Source of the DNA: Pelomyxa schiedti
Taxonomy: Eukaryota; Protista; Evosea
DNA length: 64,000 bases
Reading direction: 5' to 3'
NCBI GenBank assembly: GCA_020536535.1
Contig: JAHLWZ010000267.1
Coordinates: forward strand, 17,153 to 81,152
Shown: positions 4,462 through 38,674 of the stretch, piece after piece
Layout of the letters: every line of letters begins with the position of its first letter
Position numbering within the stretch: the stretch's first letter is position 1
The notes under the pieces: generated by a model
What the model was told of the DNA's origin: nothing
Seen by the model: the letters and a program-made list of their open reading frames with translations, nothing else
Databases searched by the model: none
Translations under genes and position numbers: made by a program

Positions 4462-5074
4462 GAAAGAAGGGGGAACCAAAATGTGCAGACGCAGGGCTTG
4501 CCGGATCTGAGTGACAACCGCAGCGATTTCACGTTTGGTTGTTTCACAACAACCTGTTTCATTGAATGCCGCCGTTGGGGTCTCTAAGTTTGTGAATAAC
4601 GAAGAAGGAGGATAATAATAAATAACTTTGAATCATTCGGTTGGGTATTATGAGTTCACCCGTTAACGAAGGTCAGGAGGACGAGAACCTCTTGAGGGGG
4701 GATTCTGCAAATGTGATCATAGTTATAACCCATGCAACGAGTTTTTGGTGACTGATAGTTATTTTGGTACAATCCTTGATTTGAGGCACGATATGCCCAC
4801 ACAAATGCGCCCTCAGCTGTTCCTCTTTCTTTCTAGGGAACCACCCGCCTGTTACGGTATTATGGGCCTTCGCACGTAGCGGGTGCTTCTCACAAAGTGG
4901 ATGGGTTCGAACGAAAGTTCCTAAGAAAAAGAACAGAAAAATTTTGACAGGTTTCTGTATGCTTTCTCACCCAATTCTCTACAATTTCTTTTGTGGAACG
5001 AACGTGGAACCCTTCTTCAAGGAACCATGATGGCTTTTTTTGTCCAGACAAGGCACAAGAGATTTCAGTGAGCC

Positions 5075-30757: not shown

Positions 30758-31734
<977 letters not shown>

Positions 31735-32005: not shown

Positions 32006-35000
32006 ATGATGCGGGTTCGGTGCTCTCGGCATGGGGTATCGTGCGGCGAACCCGTCGTGATGCGAGTCTCGGCCCACGTTGACGTTAGGCTCATGGTAGC
32101 CACCGTCACGCTCGACATCGACTGGCTCAACACCACGTCGCTGCCCCGTGGTTCTTCAGTGGAAACAACGTCGAGGAGTGCTATTATGGGAGGGAGTTTG
32201 AGTGAGGCCACTGGTGCCGTTTGTGATTGTGATTATGGGAGTGGTGGTTGCTGGGCAGAAGTGTGCTTCCCTCTAAGTGATGGTGTGTGGTAATTATTAT
32301 GATGCATAATTGAGATAGTGACAGTGGAACGTCACACTCAAACTTGTCTTCTATTTCTTCATTGCCTCTATTTTTAGGAGCCTCTGTGATTGGATATGCT
32401 GTGGATTACGAAAATGCTATGTTGGATGCTGTGATTTGTCCAAAAACCAAGGTCGATTCGAGTTAAAAAAAAAAAGGTCAAATAACGGAGTAGGCATGCA
32501 GGTAAGGGCAATTTTTGAACAGGAAACCAGACAAAATCGTGCCTCCAGTGCTTTGCATAACTTGGCTGGGGGGAATGCATATTCCGTGCAACTGTATTTG
32601 ACCCTGTATTATGCATTTCACTCAAAGTTCATTCCAGGTACCCTTTCAACCACAGAATGACCAGACGTGTAAGGATATCTTACATCTGCAAGCTATTCTT
32701 AAGAAATACAAGTTGCTATTTGGAAATCCCCCTTCCGATCACATCCACAGCTTTCAAGCTTCCCCAGTTGGAAGTTGAGGCAAAAGTGCAGTCGACTGGT
32801 GACAGCACTGGGGCATCGCTCCAACTCATTGGCATTACTTGTAATAAGCCTCCTCCTGAATTTGAGGTTTCATATGTGTCATCTGATCTATATCACGTGG
32901 TTTGGGATGCTGATCAGTTAGAGTTCTCCAGTGGGTCAGCCCTAAGAATTGAAGTTACTATGCCCGTGAAATTCTACAGCGACTCTTACGTGGCTGCTGG
33001 TCAGTGTGTGCAGTCAAATGAATCATATTTTTGCGTGCGAGACCCTTGTCCCCCATGTAGTACTAGGAATCATTCCTCAAGTCCCAGATCCTATGGGATC
33101 TTGTGGGACTCGTCACTGAGCCACTCTCTGTATAAAGTTGACGAGGTTGGCTGAGTTGAGAACAATTTTTCTCCTTCGTAACTTGCAGTAGGAACTTATG
33201 ATCGACATTGTTGAAAATCTCCAAAATGTGACAAGCATTCAGCTTCATACATTTGCGTGCAGTATCAATCAAATCGGTTCCTTCTCTTCAGAGGAGACTG
33301 ACAAAATTCGAAGATGTGTTTTGGGGATTGAATACCAAGGTGGAAGCGATTTTTACTCCCTGCTTGACTTTGTAGACTCCTCCAAAGTGGACACTTGGTT
33401 GCTCTTTTCTGATGGGTTCCCAACAATTGGGCTACATAACGGCAAAAGAAAACTCAGAAACTTGGAAAAACGGGTTTTCACATTTAGCTCTCAGACATGT
33501 AATTCAGGATTCTTATCTGCTTTTGCAAATCACTTTGGTGGGTGCCACTTCTGTATTGATAGTACAACAAACATTTCCTCAATTGTGGACGCCATTCACC
33601 GGCCTCTCACCAGATTCCTTGGAATGGCTGATGAAACAAAAACTATTGTTTTCCATGCATATCCAGAAGAAAGTCTCATTCCACCAAATCAGCAATTCCT
33701 CTTTGCTGGACATTTGGATACAGGGGCTATTACAAGCATTACAAATATTGTTCTGCGCTTCTTGGTGGATGGTAAAGAGGTAGAAAAAAGCTATCCAATG
33801 CCACACATATTCCCCGGCTGCAAAAATTCCATCCTGCAACTCCTTTTTGCCCAGCGTAAACTGGTTCACCTCCAACAACAAGAATCAGTAAAAGAGAAGC
33901 GATATTATGAAGAGATAGTCAATACCAGCAAGCAATTTGGAGTTGTTACTCGTCAGACAAGCTTTGTTATGCTCACCACACTTGAGCAATTTTTGGAGCA
34001 TGATATCGAGCCACCAGACTCACTTCCTCAACTACAAGTACAATTTCAGCTTCTCTCTTCACAGCGAAGAGTAGCACGAGAATTGCGAAAATCCAAACGG
34101 AAAACAGGGATCAATGCGGAATGGGAAAGAGTACTTCTTCGTCTCTCCATGAAAGCTCCTCCTAAGCACCTGTCGCACTTGCTCCTCTCAATTGGAAAGG
34201 TTACTGAAGACTTTGACTTTCTCCCGGTTGAAGTGTCTGTTTGTGATAAGGTATCGCACCCACAAGCAGAAGAAATTCTTGTTGTGCGGGAAGAAAGGTT
34301 TGAGTGCGAAAAAACCCTTGAATACCGTAATCCACCTGGTCAAGATGTCGGGATTATTACTACGCCTTCAATGGAAATAGATTTCACACGAGCCAAACTT
34401 GGGTCTGAACTGGTTGATGGCTGTGTACCTTCCCAGACACTCAGCTCCGAGCCAATGGATAACAATGTTTCTATGACATCCACTGACAAGGATACAATGT
34501 TTGCACAGGAATCCGGAAAAGAAATCTCCCAAAAAGAAAAGATTACTTGCAATCAACAAATAGCCTCAACAATCCCTGTTCAAGAGAAGGTCCCAGATAT
34601 TTGTTGCCAAGGACTGTCCAGTGAGGATAGCACATCCCTAATGAAACACTCACAAGTTATATGCCATGGTGGCCGCAATGAATTCTGTCTTGAATCCAAA
34701 TCAACAATAGGAGTCGAATTCGGAACTTGCTCATTCCAGGTTTCTTCCTTTCATTTCTATTGTGTTGCTCACGAAAATCCTCACCTGAATCCGTAGATTG
34801 AAAAATCTGAAGGTAAATTACAGCTTTGGGACACAGGTATGAACCTCAAGTGGTTGAATGTCGGTTTTAACCCGTGTGTAGCTGGGCAGCAAAGATTCAA
34901 TGCACTAACTCGATCTTTTTATCGAGGCGCTGCTGGAGTTATAATTGTATATGGTATTTGGACTCTCAACAGTCAAAGAATCTCACTATTCAATAGATAT

Positions 35001-37255
35001 AACCAAGCGAAAATCGTTCAGTCAAGTCCCTGTATGGATGGCAAAAGTTATGCAAAATTGTATGACTACAATTCCGGCAATTGTTATTGTAGGGAATAAA
35101 TCTGATTTGAAGGACTTGAGAGAGGTTGGAATAAATCAAATCCAATCTGACATTGTACATGCTCCAGGTTTCCTATTCAGAAGGGAAATTACTGGCCAAC
35201 AGTGTTGGAGCACCTTTTTGCGAAATTTCATGTTTGACAAATGAGAACACACACGAAGTCTTACAACTTCTATACCCAGGAATGTAGGGCCACCCTCGCC
35301 AATTTTTAAAAGACTCACGAAAAACCAGGCTCTTCTCAGATTTAGACAAGTAGGTTTCTTCTGTTCACAACCTTCCCTCTTATTCCTTTGGTAGACTTAA
35401 AACGGAGTTTGTTTTTTATAAGGCGATTCTTCTGGGTTATCTCATTTAAACATTTATTTTGTACTTATTGGGAGGACAGGTGATACAGCTGTTGGGAAAA
35501 CATCCTTACACTCTAGAATAATCTCCAGTAAAGTTAATGTTACATCACTTGTAAAACAGCTTCTCCTGAGGAGAAATAACATCCGGAATGCTGAGGCTAC
35601 TGCTATGGCACGAAAGATCTATCCACAGTGCAACAATCAGATAGTAAGAAATATATCAATCATGGGAGCTCTGGGGGTTGGCAAAACTACTCTCGTTTCC
35701 TCCTTGAAAAAGTTTCTGGGACCACAGCCAACAGTTGGTGATATCAGGACTTGGTTCTATGTTAAAACTGGCAGTAATGCACTGGAGGAGGCATTTCCAT
35801 TCATTGTACATCAATTTTTAGTCCCTCCTACTTCCTCTGAAGACATCAACTTCCTTGCCACTTGTACTTCAATTGTGGTGGTTTATGAGGCCACTAACAA
35901 CTCGTCTTATGAGACTGCTCTCCAGTGTCTTGATTCTGTGAGACTCTATCCGTGCCAGAAGATTCTAGTATGCAATAAGTGTGATTGCAGAGGAGGATCT
36001 GTCACTGGGGTGAATGTGGATTCTGCCCGTGCAGAGGCCTGGAACCGAAATGCCCATTATATTGAAATGAGCGCAAAGCTGTCTCCCCTGAGCATACAAG
36101 ACCTATGGAATTCAGTGGCTTGTGGAGTTCCCCCATCTTACGTTCCATATGAAACCACACCCCCATCACCTCAAGTCGAGGAGATAACCTCAAGTCAAAG
36201 GTGTGTCCACGATAGTAATCACAGTCCACAGTCTCAAACAGTTGGCCCAAGTCCTATTTCTTCTTGTTCCTCATCTCCAGGGCGAAATTACATTCCTACC
36301 AATGTGAATTTCGTTCCAGAACCTCGCAATAGTAGTTTAGTGAAAGTCCCATCGCACTGTGCCAATCCCACAATACTATTTGACGTGTCTTCAAACTTGG
36401 TTACACATTCCAGCAACCCAAGTGCACCTTCTTTATATTTAGAGGCTCTATCAATCTTGTCTGGAGCACTGGAAATAGGATTTGAAGACATTCCCGTAAT
36501 GAGAATGGTTGCTTACAAAATGGAGGAGTGGAGGCTCTACGATCAAGGTTTGAGGAACACTCCTTTGATGTTCACTCCAGCCCTATCAAACCTAAATAAT
36601 GGGAAAAAAAAAAATAGCCAAATACTTGTATGAGAGAATATTGCAGCTTTGTAGTGAGCCCCAAAGCTACCTTGATCTCGCCCAAGTCCTCCTCCGTCTG
36701 AATGACGTGCCAAATGCTCTGCACTACTATAAAATTATCTTGGGGGAGGATAGATGCCCCCATGAGTACTGCGAAGCTGCATTAAATGACCCAAGGTTTG
36801 AGCAAATTGAAATCACTGCACTCCTAGATACATGGTGGCTAAGCCACAGTGCATTAGACTCCCCGCCACCTCCTCAGTTGAGAATTACTCTCAAGTGGAA
36901 CAGTGCCAATACTGACCTTGACCTCATTGTCACGCCAAATGGGGCTACCAATAGTAATATGGGTGTGTTGCCGGTGGCATGCACCACCTTTGCGAATGTT
37001 ACAGAGGAGGGGGGCTGGCTTACCAGGGACTTCAACGCCTATGGGCCGGAGGAATTCATCCTGCCAAAGGTAAGTAAAATACCAAGCACATATTCTGTAT
37101 CAGCCAAGGTATGCTCACACTTGGGGCCGCCAACTGCGAGCGTAGTGACTGCGCTGTATGTGCACTCTTGCGGAGATCTTGTGGCAATGACCTGCACGAG
37201 GCTAGTATGCAAAACTGGGTCTGTGTTTCCGCTTGGCACCGTAACTGTTTCTTGA
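32006..37255 (+). CDS. Multidomain protein: VIT + vWA-like + Rab11-like G2-G5 + displaced P-loop + second divergent small GTPase + TPR + DUF2135
   Basis: VIT-like start; [11 protein letters not shown] (vWA-like); [12 protein letters not shown]; [35 protein letters not shown]; [15 protein letters not shown]; [20 protein letters not shown]; [28 protein letters not shown]; [26 protein letters not shown]. Manual GT-AG splicing of the 3' half (from ~33200) keeps one frame; 5' exons were not fully resolved. Confidence 0.72.
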
Positions 37256-37651
37256 CGAAAATGGAAACCTTCTTCAAACGAATGAACTTTGTTGAGGCTC
37301 AACGAACCTTCGATCTGGATCTGAGGGTGGAGTCACAGAAATGGCTCCAATGACCACACCAGCTCACCAGCTGTAAATAAGAAAAATGCACAAGATCTGG
37401 GCGCGAAGCCTACACAACCCGTGGAGACATTCGTTCCCTGCGTTGTCAATCACTCTTTTATCAAGTTCTTTTTTGTTGTTTATTTTTTCGTTCCTTTCCT
37501 TCGCAAAGCGGAGATTTAGAAAACAAAAAGAAAACCTTCCGTTGTGGTGCGTCGTTTGACGTCGTTTACCGCCGAGATTAATCTTGCCACCGGCCCATAC
37601 ACTTTTACCGCATTATTTTGTTTTATTCGGGTGCAGTCAGGGCGGTGCGTG

Positions 37652-38674
37652 ATGTCGGACCCATCGTTCAAAGTTGTGCTCCTTGGGGAGGGTAGTGTCG
37701 GAAAGACGTCACTGTTGTTGAGATATGTGCGCAATGAGTACTCAAGTATTGCTTTCCCGCCTTTTCTCCTTTTTTTTTTTTTTCCCCTTCGGTCGTCGTG
37801 TAGTGCCAAACCTTCCAATCAACCCAATGGCACTGATATTAACTAATATCCGCCACAAAAAAAGGTGACCACGTCCAGACAGTACAAGCATCCTTTCTAC
37901 CAAAAAGGGTCACACTAGAAGGAAAATCGGCAAGACTGCTAATTTGGGTTTCATACTACAATCCACTTTCCTATCAACAACTTACAGCACAACAGGACAC
38001 TGCCGGGCAAGAGAGATTCCATGCTTTGGGCCCAATATGTATGTCCTCTCCCTTTATGTTTTGTTTTTTCCTTATTATTTAAACAAAATTTCGCAGATTA
38101 TCGTGATGCTCACGGTATTCAATTTCCTGTTATGTGTAGTGATTCGTCTGATCTTATCAAAAGGAGCTCTTCTTGTGTATGACATCACAGATAAGGAATC
38201 ATTCGATAGAGTACAAGTTTGGGTTAAAGAGCTTCGCAAGATGCTAGGAAACGATATAGTACTTAGCATTGCAGGTTAGGAGTATGCACATGAAACAACA
38301 CATTACCCACTTCTCAACAACCTCACACTGTGCTTGTTTTACATTGTTCTTTATAAATTATGCTGAAGATTCAACAAGGCAACAAAGTGGATTTAGACAG
38401 AAACCGTGTAGTTGAGTTACAGGAGGCAGAGGATTATGCAGCCAGTGTTGGGGCGAAACACTACCTTACATCTGCTAAGTTGAATAAAGGAATTGAAGAA
38501 ATGTTCAAAGACATTGCCAAAAGTGAGATTAGCTCCACTCCCACCCCACTCCATCTCACATTATTGTAAGGACTTCTCGAGGTGCCCCTAAAAGAAGTGG
38601 AACCCCGCAGAGGAATTGTTCCCGATCCTCTTCCACCAAAGAAGAAGAATGACGGCTGTTGTGGCTCAGATTAG
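37652..38674 (+). CDS. RAB21: Rab21-like small GTPase
   Basis: FKVVLLGEGSVGKTSLLLRY; [13 protein letters not shown]; VKELRKMLGNDIVLSIAGNKVDL; TSAKLNKGIEEMF; C-terminal DGCCGSD. Confidence 0.88.

Follow-up and report, generated by a model that had tools for sequence, protein, structure and literature searches.

A Pelomyxa schiedti gene of the VIT-vWA-TPR-DUF2135 scaffold family with a predicted circularly permuted Rab11-like domain in its variable slot

The DNA analyzed here (the window) is a stretch of 64,000 nucleotides corresponding to positions 17153-81152 of contig JAHLWZ010000267.1 (C267) of the Pelomyxa schiedti assembly, which consists of 52.4 Mb in 5337 contigs. P. schiedti is an anaerobic archamoeba whose genome was obtained from amplified single cells and annotated with Augustus and PASA/EVM; its genes contain 7.4 introns each, 98.4% of the GT-AG and 1.6% of the GC-AG type (PMC8887013). 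The gene under study lies on the forward strand at window positions 32006-37255. A first-pass annotation of the window had described this region as a VIT-vWA...TPR-DUF2135 scaffold that runs in one frame through two Rab-type GTPase modules. The product of the gene belongs to a scaffold family composed of VIT, vWA with an ITIH-like hybrid/helical part, a variable slot, TPR and a DUF2135 (YfaP-like) beta-sandwich, and it is very probable that the region is a single gene of this family bearing a truly permuted Rab. The permutation of the first Rab, a 41-nt exon 10 and the pattern of cargo in the slot go beyond the earlier annotation.

The gene model was obtained by enumerating all GT/GC-AG introns that agree in frame with the conserved coding pieces, while searches were run exon by exon or with database proteins rather than with the joined product. 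The enumeration returned one consistent chain of 12 exons leading from 32006 to the stop codon TGA at 37253-37255, in agreement with the single frame proposed before. All 11 introns are of the GT-AG type, phase-consistent and 43-111 nt long, and the exons add up to 4602 nt, that is 1533 codons plus the stop, with no internal stop and an expected product of about 1533 amino acids. Pfam Ras matched the exon pieces at 34839-35244 and 35605-36120 and the motifs were read directly, so the pieces and motifs quoted by the first-pass annotation were recovered where it had placed them. Two of the three critical joins are splice-free, one inside the 516-codon exon 5, which spans the vWA/post-vWA part, a linker and Rab switch I, and the other inside the 355-codon exon 11, which leads from the P-loop piece, by way of the second Rab-like domain and a linker rich in S/P, to where the TPR begins. 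The unconserved linkers stay open, which is not expected by chance.

The features of the gene are listed below. Positions on the family profile refer to a profile of 1109 positions built without the window gene; C954, C292, C1277 and C266 denote other contigs of the same P. schiedti assembly, L026 denotes the environmental contig ERZ21831265 ctg80939l, and slashes within motifs mark splice junctions.

32006-32282, + strand: exon 1, with the start codon, the probable first half of VIT and an insertion of about 35 amino acids before the FPLSDG motif.
32378-32451, + strand: exon 2, VIT core strand; family profile positions 83-106; tblastx match to C954.
32502-32593, + strand: exon 3, VIT continued; family profile positions 108-133; the preceding intron 2 (32452-32501) is the sole frame-consistent GT-AG choice.
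32638-33145, + strand: exon 4, end of VIT, beta-rich middle and first vWA strand with the MIDAS motif DSSLS (33107-33121); family profile positions 137-281, 43 bits; colinear tblastx matches to C954 and L026.
33192-34739, + strand: exon 5, rest of vWA (GGS and SDG MIDAS residues), beta-sandwich and long helices to about 34166; family profile positions 294-594, 208 bits; its 3' part, to 34739, holds an unconserved S/T-rich linker and then Rab switch I/G2 (RNEF..STIGVEF, 34668-34739).
34797-34836, + strand: exon 6, Rab beta3 and first half of G3 (..LQLWDT); tblastx match to L026.
34882-34953, + strand: exon 7, rest of G3, (A)GQQ, including the catalytic Gln, as well as switch II and RabF3; Pfam Ras match; tblastx matches to C954 and L026.
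34997-35124, + strand: exon 8, RabF4 (Y/DIT), alpha3 and G4 (GNKSD); Pfam Ras E 1.6e-8.
35168-35283, + strand: exon 9, G5 (EISCL) and a shortened alpha5; donor GTAGGG, intron 9 at 35284-35394; 61% identity over 23 amino acids to C954 and 47.5% over 40 amino acids to L026.
35395-35435 (41 nt), + strand: exon 10, Rab beta1 (..FYKAILL/G), after alpha5.
35480-36547, + strand: exon 11, opening with the P-loop, (G)DTAVGKT, and alpha1 of the predicted permuted Rab, with a conserved tail to 35571; its 3' part holds Rab-like 2 (35647-36120) and then, to 36547, a linker rich in S/P and the beginning of the TPR-like helices; Pfam Ras match; tblastx matches to C954 and L026; the end maps to family profile positions 815-848.
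36618-37255, + strand: exon 12, TPR-like helices to about 36847, DUF2135/YfaP-like beta-sandwich at 36875-37252 and stop TGA.
34650-35571, + strand: module 1, predicted circularly permuted Rab11-like G domain in the order G2-G3-G4-G5-(alpha5)-beta1-G1-alpha1.
35647-36120, + strand: module 2 (Rab-like 2), with G1 GALGVGKT, G4 NKCD and G5 EMSAK, and no G3.

Exon 1 forms an open frame whose donor GTGTGT at 32283 is compatible with exon 2, and exon 2 is 58% identical to residues 64-87 of a Mastigella eilhardi open reading frame (ORF), P0157, inside the Pfam VIT match of that protein. The GT-AG pair flanking the short exon 10 is the only one that inserts a beta1 strand between exon 9 and the P-loop exon; the equivalents of exon 10 read LFKAVIIG in C954, within the NCBI model KAH3743917.1 (P0004), and LFKVIFIG in L026. 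A single intron of 191 nt leading from G5 to the P-loop was dropped in favour of two introns flanking this exon, as the two-intron form restored the beta1 strand, matched the exon structure of C954 and L026 and gave the G5-G1 spacing of the family. Rfam returned no match in the window.

GenBank holds a model for the 3' third of the gene, the hypothetical protein Pelo_3460 (P0001), which starts at an ATG at 35605 inside exon 11, is the sole database protein found encoded in the window, and shares an identical last intron (exon 11/12) with our model. This start allows the region to be read as two adjacent genes, the upstream one encoding VIT-vWA-Rab(G2-G5) and ending at an in-frame TAG at 35285, the downstream one encoding Rab-like 2, TPR and DUF2135 from 35605, separated by a 320-nt gap similar to the neighbouring intergenic distances. 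The first-pass annotation had likewise named a TAG near 35288 as an alternative end; the codon, at 35285-35287, sits within the intron 9 donor G/GTAGGG. Moreover, C954 and L026 both conserve exon 10 and the first 41 codons of exon 11, a stretch that lacks an in-frame ATG; a single ORF is found in the C954 paralog as well as in the Mastigella transcripts, and the upstream product would be a Rab without a P-loop. Two separate genes are therefore improbable. The published transcriptome of P. schiedti was produced by Smart-seq2 (PMC8887013), which may have led to 3'-partial models of long mRNAs.

The scaffold was examined by profile searches and structure modelling. A vWA/post-vWA profile built from the window gene and its C954 paralog retrieved 1302 proteins at E <= 0.001 among 1.84 billion, and 127 of the 159 relatives collected also carried a C-terminal TPR/DUF2135-like module, the typical length being about 1000 amino acids. 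The window exons were colinear on the family profile, with exons 2-5 covering positions 83-594 and, downstream of the slot, exon 12 covering positions 852-1019 with 61.5 bits. Exon 12 also matched P0120 by BLASTP (E 1e-11; Pfam DUF2135 64 bits in that protein) and, in a genome-wide search, the C292 paralog (E 7e-11; Pfam DUF2135 40 bits), while the C-terminal module matched P0002 and the Lysobacter protein P0003 among 5.8 billion sequences. These matches support homology of the whole TPR plus beta-sandwich module (W..D.TD.DL...P.G ... GYGPEE). In Pfam searches the relatives scored 64-91 bits for VIT and 38-66 bits for DUF2135; the VIT scores were 72.6 bits for P0157, 68 bits for KAH3731978.1 (P0031, on C1277) and 25 bits, just below the cut-off, for KAH3743917.1.

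ITIH1 is the archetypal VIT-vWA protein. The AlphaFold model of exon 5 showed a pLDDT of about 90 for residues 1-325, and Foldseek returned ITIH1 6fpy as best match (E 1.6e-8), followed by the ArnB vWA, Sec24 and vWF A1. Both the residues (DSSLS, GGS and SDG) and the AlphaFold/Foldseek results thus indicated a vWA fold with a MIDAS, which was found by the fold search of the model, whereas a PDB sequence search with the vWA profile gave no vWA. In the model of Pelo_3460 a G domain is followed by a disordered linker and then by seven helices and a beta-sandwich. The structure predictions accordingly reproduced the proposed layout, with a vWA/ITIH-like fold, a G domain in Rab-like 2, and helices followed by a beta-sandwich. 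ITIH1, VWA5A and Dictyostelium Vwa1 have the VIT-vWA core and MIDAS in common with the window gene, and the exon 5 model superposes on 6fpy over about 298 columns; however, they lack both the TPR-DUF2135 end and an inserted GTPase, and are only about 11% identical in sequence. Amoebae are known to possess cytoplasmic VIT-vWA proteins (PMC10539598).

The same scaffold was found in bacteria, at 79 loci in Lysobacter, Stenotrophomonas, Xanthomonas, Thermomonas and relatives (Lysobacterales and allies), as well as in Bernardetia (Bacteroidota), which supports the bacterial character that the earlier annotation had given to this layout. The 889-amino-acid protein of Lysobacter sp. 2RAF19 (P0003), for instance, carries VIT, TPR and DUF2135, and the bacterial members of the YfaP family, including P0003 and Bernardetia WP_338768400.1, have the same order of VIT, vWA-like core, TPR and DUF2135 as the window gene, whose C-terminal module matches P0003 with E 2.4e-3 against 5.8 billion sequences. 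Unlike its bacterial relatives, the window copy has diverged too far to be recognised by the Pfam models of VIT and DUF2135, and its slot holds two G domains, whereas the bacterial slot is about 100 amino acids long in P0003 or contains CarboxypepD_reg and a TonB plug. Among Amoebozoa, the scaffold is present as several paralogs in P. schiedti and also in Mastigella and the testate amoeba Pyxidicula, so that the horizontal acquisition suggested as a possibility by the first-pass annotation would be old if it took place. Outside Pelomyxa and Mastigella, no GTPase was found in any of the 150 best representatives. Six-frame matches to the VIT domain numbered 92 in the P. schiedti genome, on several dozen contigs, which suggests a large expansion of VIT-vWA proteins in this organism.

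The slot, measured from the post-vWA helices to the C-terminal module, has a median length of 183 amino acids in 123 relatives and reaches about 650 amino acids in the window gene, where both Rab modules fall between family profile positions 594 and 815. In the C292 paralog the slot is filled by a Q/M-rich linker without a GTPase, and in other members it holds the following cargo.

KAH3764700.1 (P. schiedti; P0053, C266:3240-9338): full-length actin, 385 bits, about 55% identical to the actin genes of the genome.
KAH3744382.1 (P. schiedti): a beta-tubulin piece.
KAH3760613.1 (P. schiedti): DnaJ.
KAH3767762.1 (P. schiedti): FYVE.
P0010: a WH2 motif.
KAH3731978.1 (P. schiedti) and the Mastigella eilhardi ORFs: an R-SNARE motif (45 bits), a predicted permuted Rab and a hydrophobic hairpin.
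C954 (P. schiedti) and L026 (environmental): a CHMP2-like hairpin, a MIM1-like motif and Rabs.
Bacterial members (Bernardetia P0121; P0072, P0099, P0123 and others): CarboxypepD_reg and a TonB-receptor plug without the barrel.

As many different host proteins fill the same slot in sister genes, the Rab insertion is one case of a general pattern. The GenBank names of the sister genes follow the cargo or the bacterial relatives ('TonB-dependent receptor', 'actin family', 'Tubulin beta chain'), and the bacterial TonB-plug cargo is the probable reason why Pelomyxa members are named 'TonB-dependent receptor'.

Module 1 contains all five G motifs, namely G2 TIGVEF, G3 WDT/AGQQ, G4 GNKSD, G5 EISCL and G1 (G)DTAVGKT, with a slightly altered G5 (EISC for ETSA, SC for SA). 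Among small GTPases it shows Rab-specific features, as the RabF motifs, including Y/DIT, and VGNKSDL are kept. The end of exon 5 is identical to the switch I of Rab11A at 15 of 16 positions; the best PDB sequence matches of exon 8 were Rab43, Rab27B and Rab11, those of the Mastigella domain were Rab4, Rab14 and Rab11, and the L026 switch I exon gave Rab11A as a weak top match (E 0.18). The motifs of the Rab11-like segment described by the first-pass annotation were thus present, but the P-loop was not in front of them: none occurs anywhere in exon 5 upstream of G2, and beta1 and the P-loop follow G5, in exon 10 and the start of exon 11. The same departure from the canonical G1-G2-G3-G4-G5 order, with G1 after G5, was found in KAH3743917.1, KAH3731978.1 and P0157. 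The G5-to-G1 spacing is 35-42 amino acids in the relatives (35 in both KAH3731978.1 and P0157) and about 34 in the window model. In all relatives with this order the Pfam Ras match begins at profile position 23-24, with 118-160 bits, and in KAH3743917.1 Pfam RsgA_GTPase bridges G4-G5-G1 with 30.7 bits. By its motifs and PDB matches module 1 is assigned to the Rab11/Rab4-type Rabs, and by its motif order to a predicted circularly permuted form whose chain would enter at switch I. No prenylation cysteine was found in this domain, which is internal, and the protein ends with ..TVTVS.

Permuted GTPases of the RsgA/YlqF type join alpha5 to beta1, and the predicted fold of module 1 should be feasible, as the same connection is made there. 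RsgA/YjeQ, YlqF/RbgA and Nog2/Lsg1 also have G1 after G5, as in module 1. However, the RsgA/YlqF order is G4-G5-G1-G2-G3, with the break between G3 and G4, whereas module 1 breaks between alpha1 and switch I; the RsgA order is not that of module 1, and the RsgA Pfam match is limited to the shared G4-G5-G1 stretch. By its RabF motifs and PDB matches module 1 is a Rab, unlike these ribosome-assembly GTPases. The segment before switch I reads ..VICHGG or ..IIAHGG and looks like a relic of the original beta1 and the first half of a P-loop; such a relic would fit a tandem duplication followed by loss of the outer parts. A literature search for the motif order G2-G3-G4-G5-G1 found no paper.

The permuted order is shared by the C954 paralog KAH3743917.1 (1614 amino acids, a single NCBI model), by KAH3731978.1 on C1277, by the environmental contig L026 and by the ORFs of Mastigella eilhardi Trinity transcripts (1662-1814 amino acids). 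In the Mastigella ORFs ..EISCLT.. and alpha5 are directly followed by TKVVPLGDSGVGKT, and one frame runs from VIT through the permuted Ras domain and another G domain to the C-terminal module shared with the window gene. The window gene is colinear exon by exon with the C954 paralog and colinear also with L026, and in all three genomic loci one intron interrupts G3 and another separates beta1 from the P-loop, at shared positions; in C954 the G3 intron is GC-AG and was accepted by the NCBI model. The occurrence of the order in P. schiedti paralogs, L026 and Mastigella indicates that it is neither an assembly nor a gene-model artefact. A chimeric join or a decaying fusion could be suspected in an assembly derived from whole-genome-amplified single cells (PMC8887013), and the window copy does lack the SNARE, ESCRT-III-like and membrane-hairpin pieces of its relatives. 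Nevertheless, the same part order recurs in three P. schiedti contigs, in one unrelated environmental contig and in the Mastigella transcripts, about 1533 codons are free of stops across 11 canonical introns, and the genome holds no duplicated DNA, a second copy of the region having been sought there without success. We therefore regard an artefact or pseudogene as very improbable. Recent gene conversion from a canonical Rab11 gene and a collapsed repeat were likewise discarded, as no other DNA match occurs in the genome.

The pieces that precede the Rab in the relatives fall into two kinds. In the closest relatives (C954, about 4500-4900, minus strand; L026, 7550-7800; proteins KAH3743917.1 and P0005), a CHMP2-like ESCRT-III hairpin lies before the permuted Rab (PDB 7zcg_B, E 7e-4; Pfam Snf7, E 0.035), and a motif resembling MIM1, the MIT-interacting motif, is present as well (..DDLVQRLRALK..); the window copy has at most a remnant of these. 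In the second branch, formed by C1277 and Mastigella, the piece is an R-SNARE (synaptobrevin) motif (45 bits), at residues 922-970 of KAH3731978.1 and 881-935 of P0157. After the permuted Rab of this branch a hydrophobic, proline-broken stretch of 30-45 residues (about 1235-1280 in KAH3731978.1 and about 1203-1235 in P0157) looks like a membrane hairpin.

Module 2 was analyzed in the context of Pelo_3460, whose residues 15-172 showed the strand and helix order of a small GTPase in the AlphaFold model. Foldseek returned RabA1a, KRAS and Rab11 with probability 1.0 and a TM to target of about 0.55-0.59, on a model whose pLDDT was only 50-78. The DxxG motif (G3) was absent from module 2 of every member; in addition, GK-S/T is replaced by GK-R in C954, G4 and G5 are lost in L026, and the whole module is absent from KAH3731978.1. 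Module 2 is thus probably a pseudo-GTPase, a small-GTPase fold without G3.

Several observations weigh against the assignment of the locus to one scaffold gene with a working permuted Rab. The Pfam models VIT (PF08487), VIT_2 (PF13757) and DUF2135 (PF09906) gave no match on the window exons or at the locus. Whole-genome scans with the same models were silent at the window locus, but revealed the C292 paralog; Pfam and NCBIfam searches of the single exons gave no VIT, vWA or DUF2135, and Pfam vWA matched neither the window exons nor any relative examined. The first-pass annotation had made its reading depend on domain searches for VIT and DUF2135, and on this point the direct searches failed it, while the identification was sustained by the family profile, the relatives passing Pfam and the structure models. 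Exon 1 gave weak matches to the family profile (E 0.4; hhalign E 0.016, probability 2.8%) and no BLASTP match to the C954 exon, so its reading as the first half of VIT is weakly supported. The gene model was derived from genomic sequence, and the only GenBank model is that of the 3' third. Two protein searches returned no protein for the 5' two-thirds (32006-35604), the length window of the exon 5 word search having excluded long relatives, and this part of the gene, with VIT, vWA and the permuted Rab, seems to have no GenBank protein model. As for module 1, the catalytic Gln is replaced by Asn in KAH3731978.1 and by Ser in L026, the G3 Asp is Glu in C954, and the linker from alpha5 to beta1 is short in the window copy; the variation in the G3 Asp and Gln indicates that hydrolysis, and perhaps Mg binding, is not uniformly kept.

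As regards function, the protein is predicted to be cytosolic, no signal peptide being seen by eye, and the permuted Rab may bind guanine nucleotide. We favour, somewhat above even chances, a mechanism of display, in which the scaffold would present a fixed Rab11-like surface to Rab regulators or effectors rather than a free Rab cycling on membranes, and the vWA MIDAS, TPR and DUF2135 would serve a binding or assembly function common to the family. The displayed surface could be an address tag that couples the scaffold to the recycling-endosome machinery, or a bait, the two being about equally likely if display is correct. Large Rabs (Rab44/45/CRACR2A), Miro and Roco carry G domains within large multidomain proteins, including in tandem. 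In the large Rabs, however, the G domain has the normal motif order and is C-terminal and prenylated, whereas the G domains of the window gene are internal, unprenylated, and permuted (as predicted for module 1) or degenerate, and their host scaffold is of another family.

A different role for module 1 would be that of a built-in switch, cycling between GTP and GDP and opening or closing the vWA MIDAS or TPR sites in cis, in the manner of Roc in Roco proteins or of the G domains in Miro. The conservation of G1, G2, G4, G5 and the G3 glycine in all members and the catalytic Gln kept in the window copy and in Mastigella are in line with such a switch, and tandem G domains are a known regulatory layout, as in Miro and Roco. 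On the other hand, the Gln replacements in KAH3731978.1 and L026 speak against it, and sister genes carry non-switch cargo (actin, FYVE, DnaJ) at the same place, which argues against regulation of the scaffold by the content of the slot. We consider this role unlikely.

The bait form of display makes predictions of its own. According to it, the copies held in the slot would act as an integrated decoy sensor, baiting effectors or toxins of intracellular microbes, with vWA, TPR and DUF2135 reading out binding or modification. E. coli YfaP, a DUF2135 protein, belongs to an alpha-2-macroglobulin operon, a bait-and-trap system, and this precedent was counted in its favour. Unrelated hub proteins of diverse kinds make up the slot cargo (Rab, SNARE, ESCRT-III, actin, tubulin, FYVE, DnaJ, and the TonB plug in bacteria), and the inserted copies are divergent or disabled: the actin shows the low identity given above, the Rab is unprenylated, variable in its catalytic Gln and, as predicted, permuted, and Rab-like 2 is degenerate, more so in L026. 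Moreover, P. schiedti hosts abundant intracellular prokaryotes (PMC10579272). Against this, no output domain for signalling or killing can be recognised in the protein, neither an effector nor a trigger is known, the address-tag form of display fits the same cargo list, and a bait would have no evident need of a conserved permutation. A bait sensor is thus a possibility to which we give clearly less than even weight. The wider proposal, a surveillance or display family of bacteria and amoebae whose chassis would expose copies of hub proteins of the cell itself to bait the effectors of intracellular microbes, is equally tentative, and so is its corollary that the Rab11-like copy was made non-cycling by circular permutation and loss of prenylation.

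Under the bait reading only, the gene resembles the plant NLR-ID proteins, in which one conserved chassis carries many host-protein pieces at one position. The likeness is an analogy and not a membership, as NLR-ID proteins are built on an NB-ARC/LRR chassis and the window gene has no NLR part; no NB-ARC/NACHT chassis is present, and only sub-threshold NACHT and AAA matches occurred at the GTPase P-loops.

Two canonical Rab genes flank the locus, both multi-exon and read by eye. The upstream gene, at 31058-31652 on the minus strand, is Rab1/Rab35-like (IGDSGVGKS.., TIGVDF, LLIGNK), while the downstream gene, at 37544-38570 on the plus strand, is Rab21/Rab5-like (VLLGEGSVGKTS, YDITD, GNKVDL, TSAK). 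By this inspection neither is Rab11-like, and they were discarded as the source of the insert.

Literature searches on permutation, DUF2135 and decoys in amoebae found nothing relevant. The parts of the gene are of known kinds (VIT-vWA, YfaP/DUF2135, Rab and permuted GTPases), while no description of their combination, of the permutation break point or of the slot with its cargo was found in the searchable literature, consistent with the earlier remark that the architecture was not recognised. Whether or not the bait reading holds, module 1, with the order G2-G3-G4-G5-G1, would be the first case of circular permutation within the Ras superfamily proper.

A Rab with beta1, P-loop and alpha1 behind alpha5 would be a natural experiment on the Ras fold, conserved in several genes of at least three organisms; it could test which connections the switch needs, serve as a template for engineered permuted GTPases, and indicate that fixed modules without prenylation can be made from Rab domains. 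The locus also provides an exon-level case of a scaffold that has repeatedly taken whole host proteins into one loop, in anaerobic amoebae packed with symbionts. In GenBank, it corrects the record of a gene that is two-thirds unannotated and of sisters misnamed after their cargo or a TonB receptor. Whether the slot cargo serves as address tag or as bait, the function of the DUF2135/YfaP and VIT-vWA scaffold becomes testable.

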